From the sequence record MK250027.1: 64,000 bases of DNA. One strand, 5' to 3'. The position numbers and the translations under genes are program-made. Below are positions 3,090 to 44,905 of this stretch, one piece after another (position 1 is the first letter of the stretch; each line of letters opens with the position of its first letter). A model generated the notes under the pieces. That model made no database searches and was not told the DNA's origin. It saw only the letters and a list, made by a program, of their open reading frames with translations.

Positions 3090-3110
3090 NNNNNNNNNNN
3101 NNNNNNNNNN
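3090..3110. other. Assembly gap (21 N)
   Basis: Run of N. Confidence 1.
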
Positions 3111-11549: not shown

Positions 11550-12821
11550 ATGGATAATAAAACATATTTAGTAATAAAAGATTATCTACGTATCATAATT
11601 AAAGATACTGAATTTGAAGATAATTTATTTGCTGTTGGTGGATGTTGTAGAGATGAAATCCTCGGTAATGATATTAAAGATTTAGATCTTGTTGTATCAC
11701 TTAATAATGGCGGTATTAAATTTGCAGAATGGTTAGAGAAAAATCATTATACAAAAGGAACCATTGTAACATATCCTCGTTTTGGAACTGCAATGTTTAG
11801 ACTTAAAGATTTTCCAGATGAAGAATTAGAAGTTGTTCAAACAAGAACAGAAATTTATAATTCAGATTCAAGAAAACCAACTACAACATATGGAAGTCTT
11901 AAAGAAGACTGTATGCGTCGAGATTTAACTATCAATGCAATTTATTATGATATATCAAACAGTAAAATGATTGATGTATGTGGTAGGTCATTTGATGATA
12001 TTAAAAATAAAGTAATTGTTACTCCATGTGACCCTGATAAAACATATATTGATGATCCTCTTAGAATTATGAGGTGTATTAGGTTCTCATGTAAGTTAGG
12101 TTGGGATATTGATAAAAATGTATTTGAAAGTATGAAAAGAAATGTAGATAGATTATCTATTATTTCAAAAGAAAGAATTAAAGATGAAGTTATGAAAATC
12201 TTTAAGTCTAATAATACGTTAAAAGGATTATGTTATATTAGAGATATTAATGCGATGAAATATATATTTCCTAATATGAGTATGTATTGTGGACCTACAT
12301 GTATTGAAAATAATTTTAAAAATATTGATACATTAAAAGATCCATATGTAAAACTTACTGTATTTAATCATAGTAATCCTGATTTAGATAAACAATTATA
12401 TGAACTTAAATTTTCAACTAATGAAATAAGAATTATTCTTAATTATATAAAATTATTTAACTATTCTATACATTGTAATACATTAAGTGATATTAGAGAA
12501 ATTCTTTATCTTTGTAAATCAAAAGACGTATTTAACAATGTATATGATATGTATAAAGTTATAGGATTTCATAAAAGATATATTGAATATGCGCATAATA
12601 ATATAGATACAGATGAATCATTATCTATAATGTTTAAATATAAGTTTCCTTTAAATGGTAATGATATTATGAATATATTTGATATTCATCCAAGTCCTGA
12701 AGTTAAAGAACTTATAGATAAGATGCATGAGTTTGTATATGAGAATCCATATCTTACAAAAGATGAACTTATTGAAAAGTTAAAAATATATAAAGAAACA
12801 AAATCTGATGAACAATGGTAA
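11550..12821 (+). CDS. cca: CCA-adding tRNA nucleotidyltransferase (class II / PolyA_pol family)
   Basis: VGGCCRD..DLDL, RRDLTINA and DDPLRIMRCIRF motifs; TAG-free. Confidence 0.9.
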   Translation: MDNKTYLVIKDYLRIIIKDTEFEDNLFAVGGCCRDEILGNDIKDLDLVVSLNNGGIKFAEWLEKNHYTKGTIVTYPRFGTAMFRLKDFPDEELEVVQTRTEIYNSDSRKPTTTYGSLKEDCMRRDLTINAIYYDISNSKMIDVCGRSFDDIKNKVIVTPCDPDKTYIDDPLRIMRCIRFSCKLGWDIDKNVFESMKRNVDRLSIISKERIKDEVMKIFKSNNTLKGLCYIRDINAMKYIFPNMSMYCGPTCIENNFKNIDTLKDPYVKLTVFNHSNPDLDKQLYELKFSTNEIRIILNYIKLFNYSIHCNTLSDIREILYLCKSKDVFNNVYDMYKVIGFHKRYIEYAHNNIDTDESLSIMFKYKFPLNGNDIMNIFDIHPSPEVKELIDKMHEFVYENPYLTKDELIEKLKIYKETKSDEQW

Positions 12822-26098: not shown

Positions 26099-26201
26099 NN
26101 NNNNNNNNNNNNNNNNNNNNNNNNNNNNNNNNNNNNNNNNNNNNNNNNNNNNNNNNNNNNNNNNNNNNNNNNNNNNNNNNNNNNNNNNNNNNNNNNNNNN
26201 N
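26099..26201. other. Assembly gap (103 N)
   Basis: Run of N. Confidence 1.
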
Positions 26202-27269: not shown

Positions 27270-27797
27270 TCAAAAGAACTTTGTTTCATTCTCTGTCTAA
27301 TAGAATATCATTATCTATATTTTTCNNNNNNNNNNNNNNNNNNNNNNNNNNNNNNNNNNNNNNNNNNNNNNNNNNNNNNNNNNNNNNNNNNNNNNNNNNN
27401 NNNNNNNNNNNNNNNNNNNNNNNNNNNNNNNNNNNNNNNNNNNNNNNNNNNNNNNNNNNNNNNNNNNNNNNNNNNNNNNNNNNNNNNNNNNNNNNNNNNN
27501 NNNNNNNNNNNNNNNNNNNNNNNNNNNNNNNNNNNNNNNNNNNNNNNNNNNNNNNNNNNNNNNNNNNNNNNNNNNNNNNNNNNNNNNNNNNNNNNNNNNN
27601 NNNNNNNNNNNNNNNNNNNNNNNNNNNNNNNNNNNNNNNNNNNNNNNNNNNNNNNNNNNNNNNNNNNNNNNNNNNNNNNNNNNNNNNNNNNNNNNNNNNN
27701 NNNNNNNNNNNNNNNNNNNNNNNNNNNNNNNNNNNNNNNNNNNNNNNNNNNNNNNNNNNNNNNNNNNNNNNNNNNNNNNNNCGAAAAAAGTCTACAT
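27270..27797 (-). CDS. Hypothetical gene spanning the N gap (about 175 aa)
   Basis: ATG TAG ACT TTT TTC (MQTFF) right of the gap is in frame with EKIQIMIFYQTENETKFF-TGA left of the gap. Confidence 0.45.
27326..27781. other. Assembly gap (456 N)
   Basis: Run of N. Confidence 1.
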
Positions 27798-34876: not shown

Positions 34877-35863
34877 ATGGAAAATACATCAACGAATACA
34901 AGTAATAATACTCAACATGTAACGCAGAAATTGTTTACAGAAATGTTGAGACCACAAACATTGGATCAAGCAATTATAGTTCCGAGAATTAGAGAGGTTC
35001 TTCAACACGGGTTGACAACTAATATTTTACTTTCCGGTTCCGCTGGTGCTGGTAAAACTTCCCTAACCCGCATCTTAACTCGCGGATACCAAGTTCTTGA
35101 AATTAATGCATCTCTTGAAAATGGTATTGATACCATTAGAGATAAAGTTATTGCATTTGCATCTCAGTCATCTCTTTTTGATGGTGAGGAAAAACTTAAG
35201 GTTGTTGTTCTTGAAGAGTGCGATGGTCTTTCTCTTGAAGCTTGGAAAGCTCTTCGTGCAACAATTGAAAAATATCATAAAACTGTTAGGTTTATTGCAA
35301 ACTGTAATTATATCGATAAGGTACCAGAACCTATTCAATCAAGATTTAATGTTATTATAATTGATCCACTTACAAAAGAAGAAGAAGATTATCTATTTAA
35401 CGGTTATCTTGAGAGAATTAAATATATTCTTACAAAATTTAGAATTCAATTTACAGAAGAAACAGTAACATCATTTGTAAGAAGTTCATTCCCTGATATG
35501 CGTTCACTTCTTAATAAGATCCAAAATCTTTATACAAGAGGATTAAAAGAATTATCAGTTGATATGCTTGCATCTTCTTATGATTGTTCAGAGTTGTTTA
35601 AGCTTATAATTGATAAACCGGATCCTGTAAACAATTATAAGAAACTTGTTGCAGATTGGTCAACACGCTCAGATGATGCAGTTCTTGCAATAGGTAAGGA
35701 TTTTCCTGATTTCATATTGACAACATGTCCACAATATGGTTCAAAACTTCCACTTATTCTTATAGCAACAGCAGAATATAATTCTATGCTTGCAACATCA
35801 ATAGATAAGTTTGTGACATTGCTTGGACTTGTATTTAAATTGCAGTTAATTATACATCAATAA
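34877..35863 (+). CDS. Sliding-clamp loader ATPase subunit (T4 gp44 / RFC small subunit-like)
   Basis: GSAGAGKTS Walker A, VVVLEECD Walker B, FIANCN, PIQSRF (SRC motif). Confidence 0.9.
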   Translation: MENTSTNTSNNTQHVTQKLFTEMLRPQTLDQAIIVPRIREVLQHGLTTNILLSGSAGAGKTSLTRILTRGYQVLEINASLENGIDTIRDKVIAFASQSSLFDGEEKLKVVVLEECDGLSLEAWKALRATIEKYHKTVRFIANCNYIDKVPEPIQSRFNVIIIDPLTKEEEDYLFNGYLERIKYILTKFRIQFTEETVTSFVRSSFPDMRSLLNKIQNLYTRGLKELSVDMLASSYDCSELFKLIIDKPDPVNNYKKLVADWSTRSDDAVLAIGKDFPDFILTTCPQYGSKLPLILIATAEYNSMLATSIDKFVTLLGLVFKLQLIIHQ

Positions 35864-35875
35864 TTTTTAGAATAT

Positions 35876-35895
35876 AAAATAAAAATGTATCTTTG
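35876..35895 (+). promoter_or_regulatory. Bacteroidota-type TAnnTTTG promoter
   Basis: AAAATAAAAATGTATCTTTG upstream of ATG 35940. Confidence 0.65.
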
Positions 35896-35939
35896 TATTA
35901 TTAGTTTTATATGAAGATACATTTTTAATTTATAAATAT

Positions 35940-36140
35940 ATGGCAACAAATAGTAGTGAAATTCTTACATTTCCTTTTAAGGTAAAGAAGAAATCAGGTA
36001 AACCATTTAAATCAATGTTAAAAATAAATACAGCAGTAGGAACAGTTAAAAATGAAAATGATCCTAATAAAAAAGATGCATTTATTTTTAAAGAAGATAA
36101 TTCTGTTGTGAATGTAGATATGTGTGAAATTATTATGTAA
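35940..36140 (+). CDS. Small hypothetical protein
   Basis: Track ORF downstream of a promoter motif. Confidence 0.7.
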   Translation: MATNSSEILTFPFKVKKKSGKPFKSMLKINTAVGTVKNENDPNKKDAFIFKEDNSVVNVDMCEIIM

Positions 36141-36253
36141 TAATAAATTATTAAAAAGTAGACTAACTATTAATATATAAGTATAATATATAAATTATAG
36201 TGAATATTTCATTATAAATAAATCATAAAACAAAAATTTAATTTAGAAAAAAG

Positions 36254-36433
36254 ATGAACGATATTTTGACAAGTATTAATGAGGCATTCGCTGGTTTCCA
36301 GGCAGATGCAACCGCTCAGGTAGAGAAGGGTAATAAGGCTGCAGGTCAGCGTGCACGTAAGGCATCTCTTGCAATTGAGAAGTTGCTTAAGACATTCCGT
36401 AAGGAGTCTATCGAGGCTGCTAAGACAAAGTGA
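36254..36433 (+). CDS. Bacteroidota histone H1-like (Hc1-like) nucleoid protein, 59 aa
   Basis: MNDILTSINEAFAGFQADATAQVEKGNKAAGQRARKASLAIEKLLKTFRKESIEAAK, matching the recognisable GNKAAGxRARK family; missed by the track. Confidence 0.85.
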   Translation: MNDILTSINEAFAGFQADATAQVEKGNKAAGQRARKASLAIEKLLKTFRKESIEAAKTK

Positions 36434-36508
36434 TAATTAACATTGTTTAACTTAATAAAGAATTATCTTTACATTATTTAATTAGAAGTAAAGATAATTT
36501 TATTATAT

Positions 36509-36580
36509 GCATGATTAGCTAAGTGGTACAGCAGGAAACTTTAAACTTCCAGATCACGGGTTCGATCCCTGTATCATGCA
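36509..36580 (+). tRNA. tRNA with anticodon UUA (ochre suppressor-type), no encoded CCA
   Basis: Acceptor GCATGAT/ATCATGC, D arm with GG, anticodon stem GGAAA/CTTCC, loop CT-TTA-AA (TTA at 36541-36543), T arm ACGGG-TTCGATC-CCTGT, discriminator A. Confidence 0.9.
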
Positions 36581-36610
36581 CATCTAAATTTAAAATAAAA
36601 GTATAAAACT

Positions 36611-36631
36611 ATGAAACTTCAACATTGGTAA
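36611..36631 (+). other. Possible minigene MKLQHW*
   Basis: AAAACT-ATG context as in real genes here; 6 codons then TAA; lies just after the UUA tRNA. Confidence 0.3.
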
Positions 36632-36726
36632 GTTACATGTGATCGTGGACCTTAATTTTTGTATATTTTAATTTTATATATTAATCATAAAACTATTATT
36701 AAACAAAATTAAAACTATACAAAATT

Positions 36727-37110
36727 ATGAAAACACAAAAAGAAAATGTAATAAGATTTAAGAATTATCTTAAGAAAAGAATATCAGAAAGAAAACAACT
36801 TAAATTAATTGCAAATAAATCATCAAAAGATAAAGATTATAATTGGATTAAATCTAGTCATGCTAAATCAGAATTAGAAGAAACATTAGAAGATATACAT
36901 GCATTGTATATTGCATATTATATTGTAAAACATGATTTAATTAGTCAAGAAAAAGAACTTGATTATATGATAGAATGTTCAAAGATATTTAAGAAACATT
37001 ATACTGTATATACAACGAAACAATGTTTTTTATCACAATATGGATATGTAAACAAGAAAATAAATGAATATCTAAATAAGTTTGGTTATGAAAGTGAATT
37101 TATTAAGTAA
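36727..37110 (+). CDS. Hypothetical phage protein
   Basis: Track ORF overlapping the next gene. Confidence 0.75.
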   Translation: MKTQKENVIRFKNYLKKRISERKQLKLIANKSSKDKDYNWIKSSHAKSELEETLEDIHALYIAYYIVKHDLISQEKELDYMIECSKIFKKHYTVYTTKQCFLSQYGYVNKKINEYLNKFGYESEFIK

Positions 37111-37465
37111 GTTAAAAATATTTACTAATAAACATAAAGTTATTAATTCTACGTTAGAAACAAATAATAAGCTTTATATATTAGTAAGTAATCACTTGAA
37201 TCCTATATATGGTGCAGTTCAAGGAGGTCATGCAATAGCGCAGTTTTTAATTGAACATCCTGATTCTGAATGGAAAAATAATACAGTTGTTTATCTTTCA
37301 TGTGATATAGATAATTTCTTAAATAGACAAAAGAAACGTCATCAATTATTAAAAGATGAATTACATAGTGTATTCAAGGAACCAGATTTAGATAATCAAA
37401 TAACTGCAATAGCATGTTATAAGATCCCTCAAAAATATGTAAAGAATTTGAAGTTGTTGAGATAA
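37088..37465 (+). CDS. Peptidyl-tRNA hydrolase PTH2-like protein
   Basis: LYILVSNHL..YGAVQGGHAIAQF...NNTVVYL...FKEPDLDNQITAIA matches phage PTH2-like motifs. Confidence 0.7.
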   Translation: MKVNLLSKLKIFTNKHKVINSTLETNNKLYILVSNHLNPIYGAVQGGHAIAQFLIEHPDSEWKNNTVVYLSCDIDNFLNRQKKRHQLLKDELHSVFKEPDLDNQITAIACYKIPQKYVKNLKLLR

Positions 37466-37564
37466 TAAACAATATATAGAGATAATAGATAAGTAAAAAT
37501 ATTCTATTATCTCTTTTTATTTAAATAGAAATAAATAATTAAACTATTAATAGTATTTTTAATT

Positions 37565-38662
37565 ATGAAATTAGTTAACGAGAAAATAGGATATGTGGAT
37601 GAAAAGCAGTTTAAACTTTCAACTGTAGTGAATGCGATGGTTGAATTTTTAACATCTCCTGATATTCATTGGGATTCTAATTATGAAGTTAAAGGAAAAC
37701 CTAATGTAAAGGATATAGATGGATTTGGTTATCATACTTTTACATTTGATTTAGATAATGATAAATTAGGATTTATAAAAATTATTATTGTTAATATAGA
37801 CAAAGATAAAGTAAAGTCTACATATAAATTCCAAGGATTTTTAGACGATGAAGAAACCGCTTTTTATTCACCTGTTGATTCTACTGTAGATAAGAAGAAA
37901 AATAATTGTGGATATATCTATATTAATTATGATATATTTAAAGAATATATTTCAGATAAACAGAAATTAACAGATGAATTAAAGGAATATACATATCATG
38001 AATTAAGACATTATTATGATAATATAATGGGCGTATTCGGTGGACCATTGAAAGAACTTATACATATTACATTGATAGCTGATGAATTTGATATTAATAA
38101 ACAAACATTCAAGGAGAAGAATAAAGAAGCATTAACTAAACATGATACAACATATAAGTCATTGCAGAATCTTCTTTATGTTTCACAACCAACTGAATTA
38201 AATGCTTGGTATCATTCATTCGTTCAACATATGATGGTATATCAGAAGAAGAATCCAAATGCAACAAAAGATGATATTATAAATTATATTACAAAACCTG
38301 AATTAAACGGTAATGATTATGCATGTTTCATTTACAGTTATGCTATTGTATATAAGACATTCGGTAATTATGCTAAAGCTATAAACGGTTTGTGTTCACA
38401 AGATCCTGTTAAGTTGTATTATTATATAATTAATACATTGAATGAATGTCAACCATCTGATAAGACTATTAAACAGATGAATGATTTATTTGAGAAGAAT
38501 TATATTGATTATTTCACAGATACTGTTGATTATAAAACATTCGGTATAAAGTTAAGTGCATTCATTAATGATTATTACATGCATTATGTGTATAAGAAAA
38601 TTGCGCCTAAGTATTTACATACATATAAGAATATGCAGAAGTTTATTTCTACACTTGTTTAA
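37565..38662 (+). CDS. HExxH metallopeptidase-like protein, paralog 3; TAG-free
   Basis: YHELRHYYD...QPTELNAW. Confidence 0.7.
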   Translation: MKLVNEKIGYVDEKQFKLSTVVNAMVEFLTSPDIHWDSNYEVKGKPNVKDIDGFGYHTFTFDLDNDKLGFIKIIIVNIDKDKVKSTYKFQGFLDDEETAFYSPVDSTVDKKKNNCGYIYINYDIFKEYISDKQKLTDELKEYTYHELRHYYDNIMGVFGGPLKELIHITLIADEFDINKQTFKEKNKEALTKHDTTYKSLQNLLYVSQPTELNAWYHSFVQHMMVYQKKNPNATKDDIINYITKPELNGNDYACFIYSYAIVYKTFGNYAKAINGLCSQDPVKLYYYIINTLNECQPSDKTIKQMNDLFEKNYIDYFTDTVDYKTFGIKLSAFINDYYMHYVYKKIAPKYLHTYKNMQKFISTLV

Positions 38663-39418: not shown

Positions 39419-42400
39419 TTATAATTGATATATTGTACTCATACCTATAGTTGTTATTTCATCTTTAATCCCATGAACATAGAACTATACAACTAATTGT
39501 AATATACCTATTTCTTTCCTACCAGAATTATTTTCTGATATATAATCTGTTATTATACCTCGTTGATTATGTAATATCTTGAAGTCTTTTATTTTTAACA
39601 TTGAATCTTCAAATTTTTCCGATGATATTTCTTCTATTTCCCCACCAGATCTTTCCAATGTATATCTTATATTATGAATATAATCTCTAATAACATACTC
39701 TTCAATACTATCTAATCCTTCTTTAGGTAAATCTTTAACATCAAACATTAAGTTATATATATTAGTTGTAACAGAAGTACCATATTGTTTAATAGATAAT
39801 GAATGAATCTACTCATGTTGTATAAGGTCTCTATCAGATTTCTTGTCAATTGTCAACATACATTGTAATTCACCAATTTTTGATTTATGTGATTCTGTTG
39901 CTTCCTTTGCAGTAAATTTAACTTTATTTGTTTTTGAAACATTACCTTTCTATGTCAGAAGATTACATGTACATCCTTCTTGTTCGACAATGGTTCCGTC
40001 ACTATAATAAATTTTATACTTAACAGAAACATTATTAGAGTTATCAGTAGATGCACCAGTTTCATTCATATTATAAATAACAGTTTCACCGTAAGTTGAT
40101 AATGTATTTAATGGTGAGAACTATGATTCAAATCCCACAATAAATACATCTTTATAATATATGTCACGAGTACCTGTTTCAAATTTACCTACGGTATCTT
40201 CTCCTTTATCTACATAAACAAAACCATCTGCTTCATTTATAACTCTATTACCATATACGTCACAACAAATCATATTAGGCGATTGTGAACCTAATAATTC
40301 TGGTTTAATAGTTAATATCTTATTTGCAGATTTAAACACAACTTGCTTATCTATTAATCCTTGTTCTGTTTGCCATGTTTCCTAATCTTCTATTATATAT
40401 GATTTCCAATCCCAATGAACTCTTAACGGAATATCTTTATCATTAAATTTCTATGATAATATATTCTATGAAGAATCTGGTTTTAATATAATATTTCTAC
40501 CCTTTGATATTGTAACAGGTTTATCTTTGAATACATAAAGATTTTCATTTGTATATTGAAGACTTGCGTCTATCCATATATTCTGTAAAAGTTTAGGATC
40601 ATAATCAAATACCTAGGCGGAATATGTAGTATCGAGATAACTGTCAAATAACAATGGTTTTGGTTCATATGTCACAGAAGTTCTCTATACGACACCTTTA
40701 TTATATCTTGATGTAAATTCTTCTCCATAACTATTAACACGCAATATATACTATGCTGCACGTAAATGTGCAGGACACATCTTTAATTTATATGGATTAA
40801 GTGTCGTTAATTTACCACCGGCATTTAATGTACGTTCTGCTTTATTATGATATAACTTATTATTGAATTTCTATAAATCAACTACACCATTTAATGTATA
40901 TGTAAATGTATTATCTTCATTCTATGATATATTAATAATTCTATATGCTGTTTCATTATCTATCGCATTATTTGTATAATCATTATGAATTTCTGTTTCA
41001 TCAGTATAACAAATTTTAACAACTTGATTCTCCATGAATCTTTGTTTGGTATCATTTGTAATATGAACATAAGATAAATTATTGGATGTATCAACTGTTA
41101 ATTCTTTATCTATTGTACTATTACCTTTGGAATCTTCAAACACATATTCATTTGCTGTATATACATATGCGTTCATGGAATTAATGAAGAATGCAGATGA
41201 GTTAATAGATGAGTTAACATTTTTATCAATAGATTTCTAATATATATCATCAAATGCTTTTTCATTTAACATGTTTGACTTTTTCTTTACTGTTATGTAA
41301 GAATTATTTAAGTCAAACCTATAATAAGATGAATCTATAATGGATGAATCATGCGTATAGAATTTTTCTACCTCAAATGGATATATATCAACTAATATAT
41401 CTTTTTGAATGCAATCATATATACATAAGCCAACATATGATGAATTTGCTAATATTTCTCTATTTGGACTTTCATCAACCAATATGAATTTATATATATC
41501 ATTAGTTTTCTATATACTTAAAACCTATTCAGTGAAGTTATTGAATACTATGAAATTACCAGGTTTTGGAGTATCAATAGCATATGATATATTATCATAT
41601 TCTATAGTGTTAGGTGAATCAACCAAAGGATCAATATCATATATTCTATATGTCTAAGGGTAAATAGGATAATTACCAAACTTGTCTATATCTTTAAATA
41701 ACTATTCTTGCTCTGTATTTTTTAATTTATCACCTAATGAATTTCTATTATAAAAATCTTTATTATTTACAACTTCTTGTTGATTAAGAATAATATCAAG
41801 ACTTATAGGCTTTGTAGTAACTGTAGTAGTATCATCACTGTTATTCACGAATATATTATTATAATAATCATATGCGTTTACAGAAACAGTATAATTACCT
41901 AATCTGTTTACAGACACATCTACATATCTGTTAGTAGAAACACATTTATCTATTTCCGCATTTGATGTTGCAGTTTTTAATTTTGAACTATCAACAGTAT
42001 AAATAGGAACTCTATCAGATAAGTAAGTATAATTTACAGTTATTGGTTGTTCACTACTTTCTAATTCTTCTCCGAATACTAATTCACATCCGCATGCCTT
42101 ACCATTATTAATATTTAAATCTGATTGCTTATTCCTAAATAATATTCTTCCTTCTATAATCTCAAGAATGTAATCACCTGGTAGTAACTCGTCATTATTA
42201 CCGCATTTATAATTACGGATAATTATCTAAGGTACATTCCATTTATTCTATGATGTATATATGAATTCTGAATCTAAACCATTATAAGTTTTTGAACTTA
42301 TGTTCTTATTTGTTTTCTATGCCCAATATAATTTATACTTATCATAATTTCTTTCATTTTCCATAGGATATAAGAAAACTTTCTAGAAGTCTTTATATAC

Positions 42401-44905
42401 AGGTTCATCAGTTTCCTACTCATATAAAGCATAATATTCTTTACCAGTTTTCTGATCGCTCACAACATTAATTGAATATGCAATATTAGTTTTCCAGTCA
42501 CCGTGACAATACCTTAAATTACCTTGAGTTATTTCAATTATAGGCAATTCAGATTTATCGATTTTAGAAAAATTCTATGTATCATCATAAAATAATATTT
42601 CATTATCCTATATAAGAATAGGGTTCTATATATAAGAAGAATCTGTAAATTCCGCTAATGTACCAGATGAAACATCTTTATTTGTTAATACAAACTAATA
42701 TTCCTATACAGGTACTAATGTTTCTAATGGAGCAGAAACATATATTGACGAATTCAATGTTTCATTATATACTTCATTTATGATAAAATCTTCTATTTCA
42801 AAATCATCATAATCTCCTATTGTTAAAGAATCAAATTCATTTAATGAGCATTTCAACATTGCTGACGAATCTCTAAATAAAATATCATTTATACACATAT
42901 CATCAACAGATGTATCTAAATGTGAAAGAGATGCATCTAATGTATCATTATGATATTCATTATTAGATGAATCTGTTGTTACATTTATATATGGATTATT
43001 ATGAACAATCTTAGGTGTTACTTTAGCAATAGTTGTAATATCCTACAAATGATGCTATGTAACATATGCCTAATTTTTCATTCTCTCAATGATTATTCCT
43101 TCACCACATATATCAGATATATAACAGTTGACACCCAATATATATTTTTCTAACCATTGTTTTACAGAGAATAATTTTGCGAGAATTTCATCCGTTCTGT
43201 ATTCATATATAGGTTTAGTTATAGGAAGTTGAAAAAATACATCTTGTTTTTCAGTAAATCCAGTGCTCAAATCTTGGTGATGTGTATCTTTATTATATGA
43301 TGATTTATATAAACCAGATTCAGGTGAAGTTGTTGGATTATCTTTTGCTGGATTATCCAAACGTCTTGTATACATGGTGATTTTTTCACCTGTTTCATCA
43401 TCTATTTCATTAAGGTGATATATCATGGATAATCTGTTTATCTTCTTATAACGTTCGAACTCACCATATGTAACACCTATTTTCTTTAACTTAGTATTTA
43501 ACGATTCACCTTTCTATAAATCATATGTCTGTAAAGTTACATATCTATCTTTGTTATTCTAATCCTTTATTTTATACCATTCCTTAAATATTAAGTCACC
43601 ATATCCTAAAAATTTGATAGCACCCATCAATGCTTTATATGTACCAACATAAGGGAATATCTGATCATAATTAATCATAAGTTCTTTAGACTTTGTATTA
43701 ATTAATGTCCAGTCAACACCCTATTCATCAACATCTTGTTCCTTAAATATATTAGGATATTTAACAGGATCAGGAATTCCAAAATTTCCTAATAATGCTC
43801 TAAACCTTTCATCTTCCCCTTCAACTTCAGTTAAGAATGTAAACAAACCTAAAATATACTTTTTCTTTGTTTGTGTATTAACAAGATACATTGCCATTAT
43901 ATTTTGATAACATCCTTCAACCTCTGTTTGAAATCCAACAGAGAAATATATTGGTGTATTTTCAGGTGTTTGATTAAATTGATCATAAAAATTTAATTTA
44001 GTATTAACCTCATATGAATCTTCCCATATAATGTTTGCAACAGAATCAGATGATATGAATCTCATTTCAGAATCTTTTTGAAATTCAAATCTCAATGTAT
44101 AATCAGTGTTTGAATTATCGAAAGTAGGTCTACAATTTCCATCGTTAGTATTAGTAATAATAATAAATGTACTGGCAGCTACAAATTCTGTTGAAACTTT
44201 ATCCTATTGAATCTATCCAGTATATCTCACACAAGGAAATAAATCATCATAATTAAAATTATTAACAATAAGATAATTAACAAATGTTCTCTAACCTAAC
44301 ATTTTATTATCTTTCTATGTCTCATCATCAAATTCTGCAATAGTTATTAAGTTATCTATTTTATAATATATTGTCTTTCCATCTTCATCTTTAATTTCCT
44401 CTGTATTTACATTATCAAATATATAATTAATTGGATAATCCTATGTAATAGTTTCAGATAAAGTATGAAAAGTTAATCTTACCGTATTATATACATAATC
44501 TGTTTGTTCTTCAAATTTTTCTTCCCATCTATGCTCATTTCTATTATATATAGTACCAGTGGATTTTGAATAATCAACTTTTTTATTAAATAATATTAAT
44601 TCTTTAATATTATTTAATTCCTTTGTAATTATAGTTTGTCCTGTTTTATGATTTACAATACTGGTATTTACTGTTATTCCAGCGTTAAATAAGAATAAAC
44701 CATGTTTATCTATTACTGTTGTTAATGTATGATTACTATCTGCAATATCATACATGAAATGTCCTGATGGTGTTTCAATAAAATACTGCTCTAACTATGC
44801 ATGCGGAATTATTTCCCATTGAATACTGTATACTTTTTCAACAGGAATTTCATATCCTTTTTCTGTAAAGAAAATTAATTTATCTCTTTCATCTATATTG
44901 TTCAT
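39419..44905 (-). CDS. Very large baseplate/tail structural protein (gp7 / tail-protein-I-like), about 1828 aa (TAG=Gln)
   Basis: Nine track ORFs share one frame from ATG 44905 to TAA 39419; YVGTYKALMGAIKFLGY motif; lies next to gp6/gp25-like genes. Confidence 0.7.

Follow-up and report, generated by a model that had tools for sequence, protein, structure and literature searches.

A tRNA gene whose anticodon, UUA, is cognate to the main stop codon of the genome that carries it raises the question of which codon this tRNA reads, which amino acid it inserts and to what end. The gene lies in a stretch of 64,000 nucleotides of sequence record MK250027.1 (here called the window), which is DNA of Lak-B, a giant gut phage of Prevotella (genome of ~550 kb; 24.9% G+C in the window). 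Lak phages are megaphages of roughly 550 kb known for reading TAG as glutamine. The ORFs of the window become much longer once TAG is taken as sense; that at 39419-44905 (minus strand) encodes 1,828 aa with 39 in-frame TAGs, and other genes of the window have none. There are three runs of N (3090-3110, 26099-26201 and 27326-27781), and the tRNA region is 100% identical to that of Prevotella phages Lak-B4, B7 and B8.

The existence of the tRNA is not new. It is listed as 'Sup TTA' at Lak-B4 346243-346314, which is the same gene as window 36509-36580 (Devoto 2019, Supplementary Table 2), and a TAA-type suppressor has been reported in 51 of 51 Lak genomes with no sign of TAA recoding, next to a TAG suppressor in 38 of the 51 (Crisci 2021, Table S5). 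Since the gene was listed in the first of these papers and its universality stated in the second, an ochre-type Lak tRNA is a known observation, as the first-pass annotation of this DNA had suspected. Those papers contain no analysis of its identity, evolution or function; what is added here is the Lys-type character of the body, the compensatory changes in the acceptor stem, the finding that the CUA cassette is accessory, a series of genome-wide negative tests and a standard-code relative with a UUA tRNA of its own. The matter is of more than local interest. Phages that recode a stop codon must convert a standard-code cell within minutes, and Lak is an extreme case: all its genomes retain a tRNA that matches the stop codon they use most, and TAG codons persist even where the expected CUA tRNA has gone. 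The residue that the UUA tRNA inserts, and the site at which it does so, would show either true UAG decoding or a deliberate loosening of UAA termination; both outcomes would matter for the annotation of phage genes, for models of genetic code change and for the supply of natural suppressor tRNAs to code engineering.

The features that concern the tRNA itself are the following.

36509..36580, plus strand: tRNA with an ochre-type UUA anticodon, 72 nt up to the discriminator A73 (ARAGORN, Rfam, cloverleaf)
36541..36543, plus strand: the anticodon T34-T35-A36, within the invariant loop U33-UUA-A37-A38, position 32 being C or U
11550..12821, plus strand: CCA-adding tRNA nucleotidyltransferase (NCBIfam and PHROG matches)

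The UUA tRNA is the sole tRNA that ARAGORN calls in the window (36509-36581, plus strand, 'tRNA-Stop', anticodon tta), and it matches Rfam RF00005 over 36509-36580 with 59.5 bits (gathering score 29; E = 2.4e-10); a score above the gathering threshold, together with the ARAGORN cloverleaf, places it in that family. The acceptor stem consists of seven base pairs, all Watson-Crick, which start with G1-C72 and C2-G71 and end in the discriminator A73. U8-A9 precede the D-arm, formed by a three-pair stem with an A13.C22 mismatch and a short loop with G18-G19. The anticodon stem has four pairs and an A31.C39 mismatch, and its seven-nucleotide loop, C32-U33-U34-U35-A36-A37-A38, combines U33 with 5'-UUA-3' at positions 34-36, an anticodon of the ochre type; the variable loop has 5 nt and the T-arm is canonical. 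CCA is not encoded, and C-A-T follows A73. The CCA-adding enzyme, which matches NCBIfam NF009814 (E 4e-45; 154 bits, below the curated cut-off of 290) and the PHROG tRNA nucleotidyltransferase (E 5.5e-49), can finish the 3' ends of this and the other phage tRNAs. The first-pass annotation had described the same cloverleaf, right in every point according to ARAGORN, Rfam and the fold; the absence of CCA and the enzyme at 11550 are likewise as it had read them, and the ARAGORN run that it had proposed does return a tRNA with anticodon tta.

All 15 GenBank Lak genomes (Lak-A1, A2, C1 and B4 among them) and 7 IMG/VR contigs have TTA as the anticodon, and it is unchanged in contigs of four runs from four studies; no UUU or CUA version was seen in these relatives and independent runs, where the first-pass annotation had proposed to look. 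In the same four runs the only change within the tRNA is C32>T, in one run, against 12-17 substitutions plus indels in 428 flanking bases. Between Lak-B and Lak-A/C three adjacent acceptor pairs have changed, each on both sides (A3-U70 to U3-A70, U4-A69 to C4-G69, G5-C68 to U5-A68), and G1-C72, C2-G71, A73, both mismatches and U33-UUA-A37-A38 are fixed. All 19 stem pairs are intact in each of the 4 variants (76 of 76 cells paired), a result equalled by 6 of 500 shuffles; these compensatory statistics are modest, because there are only four distinct UUA tRNA sequences. We can thus all but dismiss an artefact, be it an error of assembly, a Lys(UUU) or CUA tRNA with a private mutation, or a pseudogene in decay: the anticodon is identical in each Lak genome, in the IMG/VR contigs and across four studies, the tRNA is far more conserved than its flanks, and the stems remain paired in all variants through changes that are all compensatory. 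Assembly error and private mutation are ruled out by the invariance of the anticodon in these three sets. The UUA tRNA is a real, selectively maintained gene. Three matches of the first pattern scan (L001, L003 and L006) proved to be chance matches within coding sequence and not tRNAs, and the fragments of more divergent Lak relatives found via the clamp loader (L081-L083) carry no tRNAs.

The lineage of the tRNA body can be approached by comparison with the other tRNAs of the phage. Lak-B4 has about 34 tRNA genes, including Gln(UUG), Gln(CUG), CUA, two Lys(UUU) and one Lys(CUU). The Gln(UUG), Gln(CUG) and CUA tRNAs have in common U1-A72/G2-C71/G3-C70, A73 and the D-arm; the CUA tRNA aligns best with Gln(CUG), and it is of the Gln type because its acceptor, A73 and D-arm match the phage Gln tRNAs. 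The criteria for a Gln-type tRNA were derived from these phage tRNAs, and the host identity rules were in turn deduced from them; by these criteria the UUA tRNA is not Gln-like, with G1-C72, C2-G71, A3-U70 (or U3-A70) and a different D-arm. That it lacks Gln identity had been claimed in the first-pass annotation, and this part of the claim stands as regards U1-A72/G2-C71/G3-C70; the second marker invoked there, G73, is of no use as a Gln criterion here, because the phage Gln tRNAs have A73.

The UUA tRNA has no close paralogue in the phage, and its top alignment score among the phage tRNAs is with Lys(UUU). Bacterial and archaeal genomes were scanned with a pattern that fixed its unusual D-arm and T-loop and put no constraint on the anticodon arm. 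Of the six typed tRNAs recovered, four are Lys(CUU) genes in tRNA arrays and two are Cys genes of candidate-phyla bacteria. The Lys genes also resemble the UUA tRNA in features that were not part of the search pattern, namely the variable loop (identical in one), U8-A9 and A73. When the UUA tRNA was compared by BLAST with annotated phages, tRNA-Lys was the main match outside Lak, both in a Rhodococcus phage and in many of the 36 mycobacteriophage records, with tRNA-Asn next. Aligned with Lys(CUU) of the Rhodococcus phage Francesca, it has in common G1-C72/C2-G71, the type of D-arm, A26, A73, most of the anticodon stem and a near-identical T-arm; against E. coli there were zero matches at E<=10. 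The body is therefore probably, by these likenesses, of the Lys lineage, and not certainly so, because tRNA-Asn and tRNA-Cys are also among the matches. The kinship with Lys that the first-pass annotation had noticed in the anticodon loop thus extends to the nearest annotated relatives, which are tRNA-Lys genes.

The identity set of E. coli LysRS comprises U35, A73 and U36. By E. coli rules, from which those of Prevotella may differ, the UUA tRNA presents U34, U35 and A73, with A instead of U at position 36. Since U35 and A73 favour LysRS under these rules, and lysine-inserting UUA suppressors derived from tRNA-Lys exist, lysine would be the most likely charge. Searches for a phage-encoded LysRS, GlnRS or RF1 found none, and Lak has no synthetase set (Devoto 2019, supplement), so charging must depend on a host enzyme.

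A tRNA cognate to UAA could mean that TAA is itself recoded. This was evaluated with a gene set of 537 ORFs from Lak-B4 and the window, minus the B4 copy of the window, which reaches 87% coding with TAG as sense. TAA ends 475 of these genes (88.5%) and TGA the other 62, so that UAA is indeed the main stop codon, as had been read from the window; the TGA share is 11.5% in TAG-free and in TAG-containing genes alike. After TAA, the next in-frame stop comes at a median of 6 codons. A stop follows TAA directly in frame in 14.1% of cases; the two other frames give 9.3% and 12.0%, with no clear enrichment of tandem stops in the 537 genes. With the equal TGA shares, this leaves no trace of UAA readthrough in tandem stops or in a greater use of TGA by TAG-containing genes. 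Behind TAA, long ORFs are least frequent in the same frame (22, against 30 and 56 in the others), a pattern also seen in genes that end in TGA; start-less extensions of at least 40 codons number 13 in frame 0 against 27 and 32 in the controls, and their translations are junk-like. Only 16 gaps of at least 700 nt are left, and most of them are tRNA arrays or lie at contig edges. Late genes show no shift to TGA, no extension past TAA is conserved and, genome-wide, no TAA-split gene was found.

Taken together, ORF content, gaps, same-frame ORFs and start-less extensions give no indication of a reassignment of TAA to sense. These four genome-wide tests, which agree with the published Lak survey (Crisci 2021) and with a survey that found no TAA recoding in 10,754 jumbo phages (PMC13037316), rule out TAA as a sense codon. 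Nor do they lend support to programmed readthrough that would yield functional extensions, and the regulated UAA readthrough proposed in the first-pass annotation has left no genomic signature in stop usage, extensions or same-frame ORFs. A narrower version, in which TAA is partly recoded or read through by design at particular genes, has in its favour the presence of the cognate tRNA and a conserved, UAA-ended mini-ORF 30 nt 3' of the tRNA, which carries an in-frame indel in another population and may be one of the genes concerned. However, the stretch past the mini-ORF is not conserved, the genome already reaches 87% coding with TAG as sense and has 16 gaps of 700 nt or more, same-frame ORFs (22 against 30 and 56) and start-less extensions (13 against 27 and 32) are at their rarest in frame, and TAA recoding has been seen neither in Lak (Crisci 2021) nor among the 10,754 jumbo phages (PMC13037316). 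We consider this version very improbable, and long TAA-readthrough extensions are largely refuted. The UUA tRNA neither defines the genetic code of the phage nor signals recoding of TAA.

The other codon that the tRNA might read is UAG, by wobble at U34. The first-pass annotation took it as known that TAG recoding needs a CUA tRNA-Gln, and named the UUA tRNA as a possible second decoder. The premise does not hold in this clade. By BLAST, the Gln-type CUA tRNA is present in 11 of 15 complete Lak genomes and missing in B1, B3, B6 and B9, that is, in four of the nine complete Lak-B genomes, all of which keep their TAG codons. The polymorphism concerns a cassette of 877 nt in B2, B4, B5, B7 and B8 (Lak-B4 413967-414843, L047:1468-2344), which in B4 consists of a 253-aa gene with eight TAGs and the CUA tRNA, against an unrelated segment of 406 nt in B1, B3, B6 and B9 (in Lak-B1 L111:1769-2174). 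The genomes are complete and otherwise roughly 99% identical; the left flank of the cassette is only 97.6% identical, which suggests recombination. In Lak-B1 a CUA anticodon is absent from all 33 tRNA matches that were typed, intron-bearing ones included. A suppressor hidden in the replacement segment was also considered and is ruled out, as the 406 nt contain nothing tRNA-like above noise.

Over 133,639 aligned codons, B1 has 1,082 TAGs and B4 has 1,085. With the Lak-A/C-type genome G006 as outgroup, each lineage has lost three TAGs, and B1 has gained two and B4 three, all from CAG; TAG codons change less between B1 and B4 (1.1%) than AAG (2.2%), CAG (2.7%) or GAG (3.5%). Since B1, which lacks the CUA tRNA, keeps and even gains TAG codons, UAG must be adequately decoded without it. 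The CUA tRNA is a dispensable, accessory cassette, and in the four genomes that lack it the UUA tRNA is the only phage tRNA able to pair with UAG. A CUA suppressor is seen in only about 40% of TAG-recoded phage genomes (Borges preprint). The loss of CUA without loss of TAG in such close and complete genomes sharpens the question of what the UUA tRNA does.

These facts give rise to the main rival of the reading that we prefer, which is that the UUA tRNA is the universal decoder of UAG by wobble of a probably modified U34 with G, RF2 shielding UAA from it and the CUA tRNA serving as an accessory booster. Its distribution is what such a decoder would need (51 of 51 Lak genomes against 38 of 51 for CUA in Crisci 2021; 15 of 15 against 11 of 15 in GenBank), and the persistence of 1,082 TAGs in B1 against 1,085 in B4, their gains from CAG and their slow change would be accounted for. 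The UUA tRNA and RF2 both lie in standard-code blocks, and the UUA and CUA tRNAs have the CU-NUA-AA loop in common. On the other hand, the body is of the Lys type, without any acceptor feature of the three phage Gln-type tRNAs, although a decoder of UAG would have to insert Gln, and an unmodified UUA anticodon barely reads UAG (PMC3592851). UUA tRNAs are also present in standard-code phages, and the genomes without CUA could rely on near-cognate reading by the phage tRNA-Gln(CUG).

The meaning of TAG itself bears on this rival. Lak-B proteins with TAG masked as X were aligned to those of G005, a standard-code genome described below; at the 104 sites compared, Q is the commonest partner and gives the best likelihood, 17.6 log units above K. 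In 350 orthologue pairs between Lak-B4 and G006, Lys is the partner at 6.0% of TAG sites and 6.2% of Gln codons (OR 0.91, p = 0.49), and Glu at 4.6% and 4.7%. An early hint in a 26-kb sample that UAG might be partly Lys (OR 2.36, p = 0.054) disappeared genome-wide (OR 0.91, p = 0.49) and was rejected. Over evolutionary time TAG has meant Gln, with no sign of Lys tolerance at these sites. Because TAG sites evolve like Gln codons, with Q as the best-fitting meaning, insertion of Lys at about 1,100 of them is implausible. A second UAG decoder, as the first-pass annotation had it, fits poorly with a Lys-type body and Gln-like TAG sites, and of the two readings that we take seriously UAG decoding is the less likely.

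Other properties of TAG were observed in passing. In the Lak-B4 gene set plus the window TAG occurs at 8.6 per 1000 codons, more often than CAG (4.7), and TAG-bearing and TAG-free genes are clustered along the genome (159 runs, about 259 being expected at random). Exchange with Ser is commoner at TAG sites than at Gln codons (OR 1.79), an excess that probably comes from one-step mutations between TAG and TCR.

UUA tRNAs in phages that do not recode TAG were sought in IMG/VR by a degenerate pattern scan. G005, a contig of 676 kb (98% complete, 26-29% G+C) with a solitary UUA tRNA, is a distant relative of Lak: when one third of it was sampled, 23 Lak-B proteins had matches there, at about 27-45% identity. 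Its code is the standard one, as taking TAG as sense adds nothing and its stops are TAA (209), TGA (46) and TAG (18). No CUA is found among its 40 tRNAs, and a search found neither RF1 nor RF2. Sup-UUA tRNAs have also been reported in the standard-code phage G and Klebsiella phage phiKp24. All of these are, like Lak, very large tRNA-rich phages with a solitary UUA tRNA and genes mostly ended by TAA; they differ in that Lak recodes TAG and they do not. The tRNAs also differ. That of G005 is a barely altered bacterial tRNA-Lys, with a core 91% identical to E. coli tRNA-Lys and G73, whereas the Lak tRNA is highly diverged and has A73; that of phiKp24 is reported to have arginine identity, whereas the Lak body is Lys-like. 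Orthology of the G005 and Lak genes was considered and is unproven because their immediate neighbours differ, with only a loose linkage to the clamp loader in its favour; since tRNA body and neighbours both differ from Lak, the G005 tRNA may have arisen independently, in which case it would say nothing of an ancestral role. Two further IMG/VR contigs, unrelated and apparently of standard code (L086, 16.7-kb, 34% GC; L087, 65-kb, 44% GC), carry UUA tRNAs with the same CUUUAAA loop as Lak, one of them with an encoded CCA.

The reading that we prefer, tentatively and with somewhat less than even confidence, is that the UUA tRNA is a host-charged, probably lysine-accepting ochre suppressor that acts at UAA, independently of TAG recoding. 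It would be transcribed from a standard-code gene block, its 3' end would be completed by the CCA-adding enzyme, and a host synthetase, most likely LysRS through recognition of U35 and A73, would charge it. The charged tRNA would then compete with release factors at its cognate UAA and cause low-level readthrough, a cost that we propose is tolerable with another in-frame stop at a median distance of 6 codons and an RF2 supplied by the phage itself. The phage would most likely benefit either because termination is weakened on the mRNAs of its host or of rivals, or because ochre mutations are rescued at a low level; this benefit is a conjecture, as the genome shows no adaptation to UAA readthrough. 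A search for the locus among RNA runs found it in none. A UUA anticodon does suppress UAA in bacteria and, unmodified, reads UAG poorly (PMC3592851), and the Lys body, the UUA tRNAs of standard-code megaphages and the Gln-like evolution of TAG would all point to UAA as the codon read. Reading of UAA leaves unexplained, however, how the Lak-B genomes without CUA decode their roughly 1,100 TAG codons, which wobble reading of UAG by the UUA tRNA does explain.

A Lys-like body with an altered anticodon would also suit a tRNA that does not decode at all: it might remain uncharged and, as a decoy (a role put forward in the first-pass annotation) or competitor, occupy host anticodon nucleases aimed at tRNA-Lys, or it might have another non-translational role. 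That Lak encodes an RNA ligase 2, a Thg1-like enzyme and the CCA-adding enzyme suggests that tRNA damage matters to it. Yet a loop with U33 and A37-A38 is what is expected for reading codons that start with U, and the strict conservation of U33, anticodon and A37-A38, with an intact acceptor stem and A73, fits decoding on the ribosome. Nor could the UUA tRNA stand in for a tRNA-Lys that had been cleaved, since it is able to read neither AAA nor AAG. We know of no precedent for such an anticodon-nuclease decoy, and a non-decoding role seems improbable.

A further idea, which we consider doubtful, joins several of these elements: the UUA tRNA, and not CUA, would be the constant core of the Lak code switch, reading UAG by wobble with a frameshift-free RF2 guarding UAA, and would descend from an ochre suppressor of standard-code ancestors. 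If the suppressor had been inherited from standard-code megaphage ancestors, then the reassignment of a stop codon would have been made possible by a suppressor that already existed.

The RF2 in question is encoded in Lak-B4 at 293304-294377 (L073:1477-2600), in a TAG-free run of genes. It forms a single uninterrupted frame, without the +1 autoregulatory frameshift common in bacterial prfB; the GGQ motif is intact, the stop-recognition tripeptide is SPY where SPF is usual, and about 1 kb upstream is free of ORFs.

Known systems offer three points of comparison with ochre suppression by the Lak tRNA. The E. coli suppressors supG and supL are lysine-inserting ochre suppressors, forms of tRNA-Lys with anticodon UUA, and have in common with the Lak tRNA the Lys-type body, UUA and A73. 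Their suppression of UAA is inefficient, that of UAG is weak, and in both cases release factors compete with them. They are, however, laboratory mutants of a host gene, whereas the Lak tRNA is encoded by a natural phage gene that all Lak genomes retain; its body has diverged strongly, and its A31.C39 mismatch is conserved. The Gln-type CUA tRNA of Lak and other code-15 phages is likewise phage-encoded, with the CU-NUA-AA loop, no CCA and charging by the host (presumed in the case of UUA); it differs in its CUA anticodon, its Gln acceptor and D-arm and its accessory nature, being missing in four of 15 genomes, whereas the UUA tRNA is universal and of the Lys type. In ciliate code 6, finally, a tRNA-Gln(UUA)/tRNA-Gln(CUA) pair makes both UAA and UAG sense. 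Lak resembles it in having UUA and CUA beside UUG and CUG Gln tRNAs, but both ciliate tRNAs are Gln tRNAs, whereas in Lak TAA is a stop and the UUA tRNA is not Gln-like.

The surroundings of the tRNA contain the following features.

34877..38662, plus strand: TAG-free (standard-code) gene run around the tRNA, four called genes (ORF list, family matches)
34877-35863, plus strand: clamp loader, first gene of the run (family matches)
36254..36433, plus strand: gene for a basic protein of 59 aa, histone-H1-like by eye (ORF and translation; conserved in Lak-A/C)
36459..36501, plus strand: AT-rich 14-bp hairpin with a U-run, a predicted fold that ends about 9 nt 5' of the tRNA
36611..36638, plus strand: conserved block of 28 nt with the mini-ORF MKLQHW-TAA, near-invariant between Lak-B and Lak-A/C in a divergent spacer

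An ECF-type sigma factor is encoded upstream of the run, and after the UUA tRNA three ORFs, all TAG-free, extend to 38662. The 59-aa gene possibly forms one transcription unit with the tRNA; it is closed by two successive stops (36254-36436 with both included), which read TGA-TAA in Lak-B and TAA-TAA in Lak-A/C. The hairpin between them shows two compensatory changes between Lak-B and Lak-A/C and was not called in a GC-based terminator scan; its predicted fold would suit a terminator-like or processing element. The best sigma70-like site lies at 36159-36187, and none scores above shuffles in a model that does not cover Bacteroidota-type and phage-sigma promoters.

The 28-nt block has an in-frame insertion of 6 nt in one population and a synonymous CAT>CAC change in another. 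It may encode a leader peptide or act as an RNA element, and a part in the function of the tRNA is uncertain; a repeated promoter motif is ruled out, as the block is unique in the genome. Lak-A/C types (Lak-A1, L013:2186-2288; A2; C1; IMG/VR L002) have an insertion of 103 nt directly 3' of the UUA tRNA, which Lak-B does not have.

Some minor observations concern other tRNAs. Tracts in two MAG contigs, of Oscillospiraceae and Clostridiales (L105:4590-4675 and L107:3565-3650), are tRNA-like, with the D-arm and T-arm of the Lak UUA tRNA and odd anticodon arms, and ARAGORN does not call them. The main tRNA array of the phage (also L045:6402-6477) is not the same in the near-identical genomes B4 and B1: Phe(GAA) is not called by ARAGORN in B1, and one position holds AAT (Ile) in B4 (L045:2874-2949) and ATT (Asn) in B1 (L112:1318-1393). 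Lak-B1 has, at 201405-201478 (L113:905-979, minus strand), a solitary tRNA-Lys(UUU) with an extra T, which gives an 8-nt loop and the ARAGORN anticodon 'tttt', against a normal 7-nt loop in its Lak-B4 counterpart; it is either a homopolymer length variant or a tRNA resembling a frameshift suppressor.
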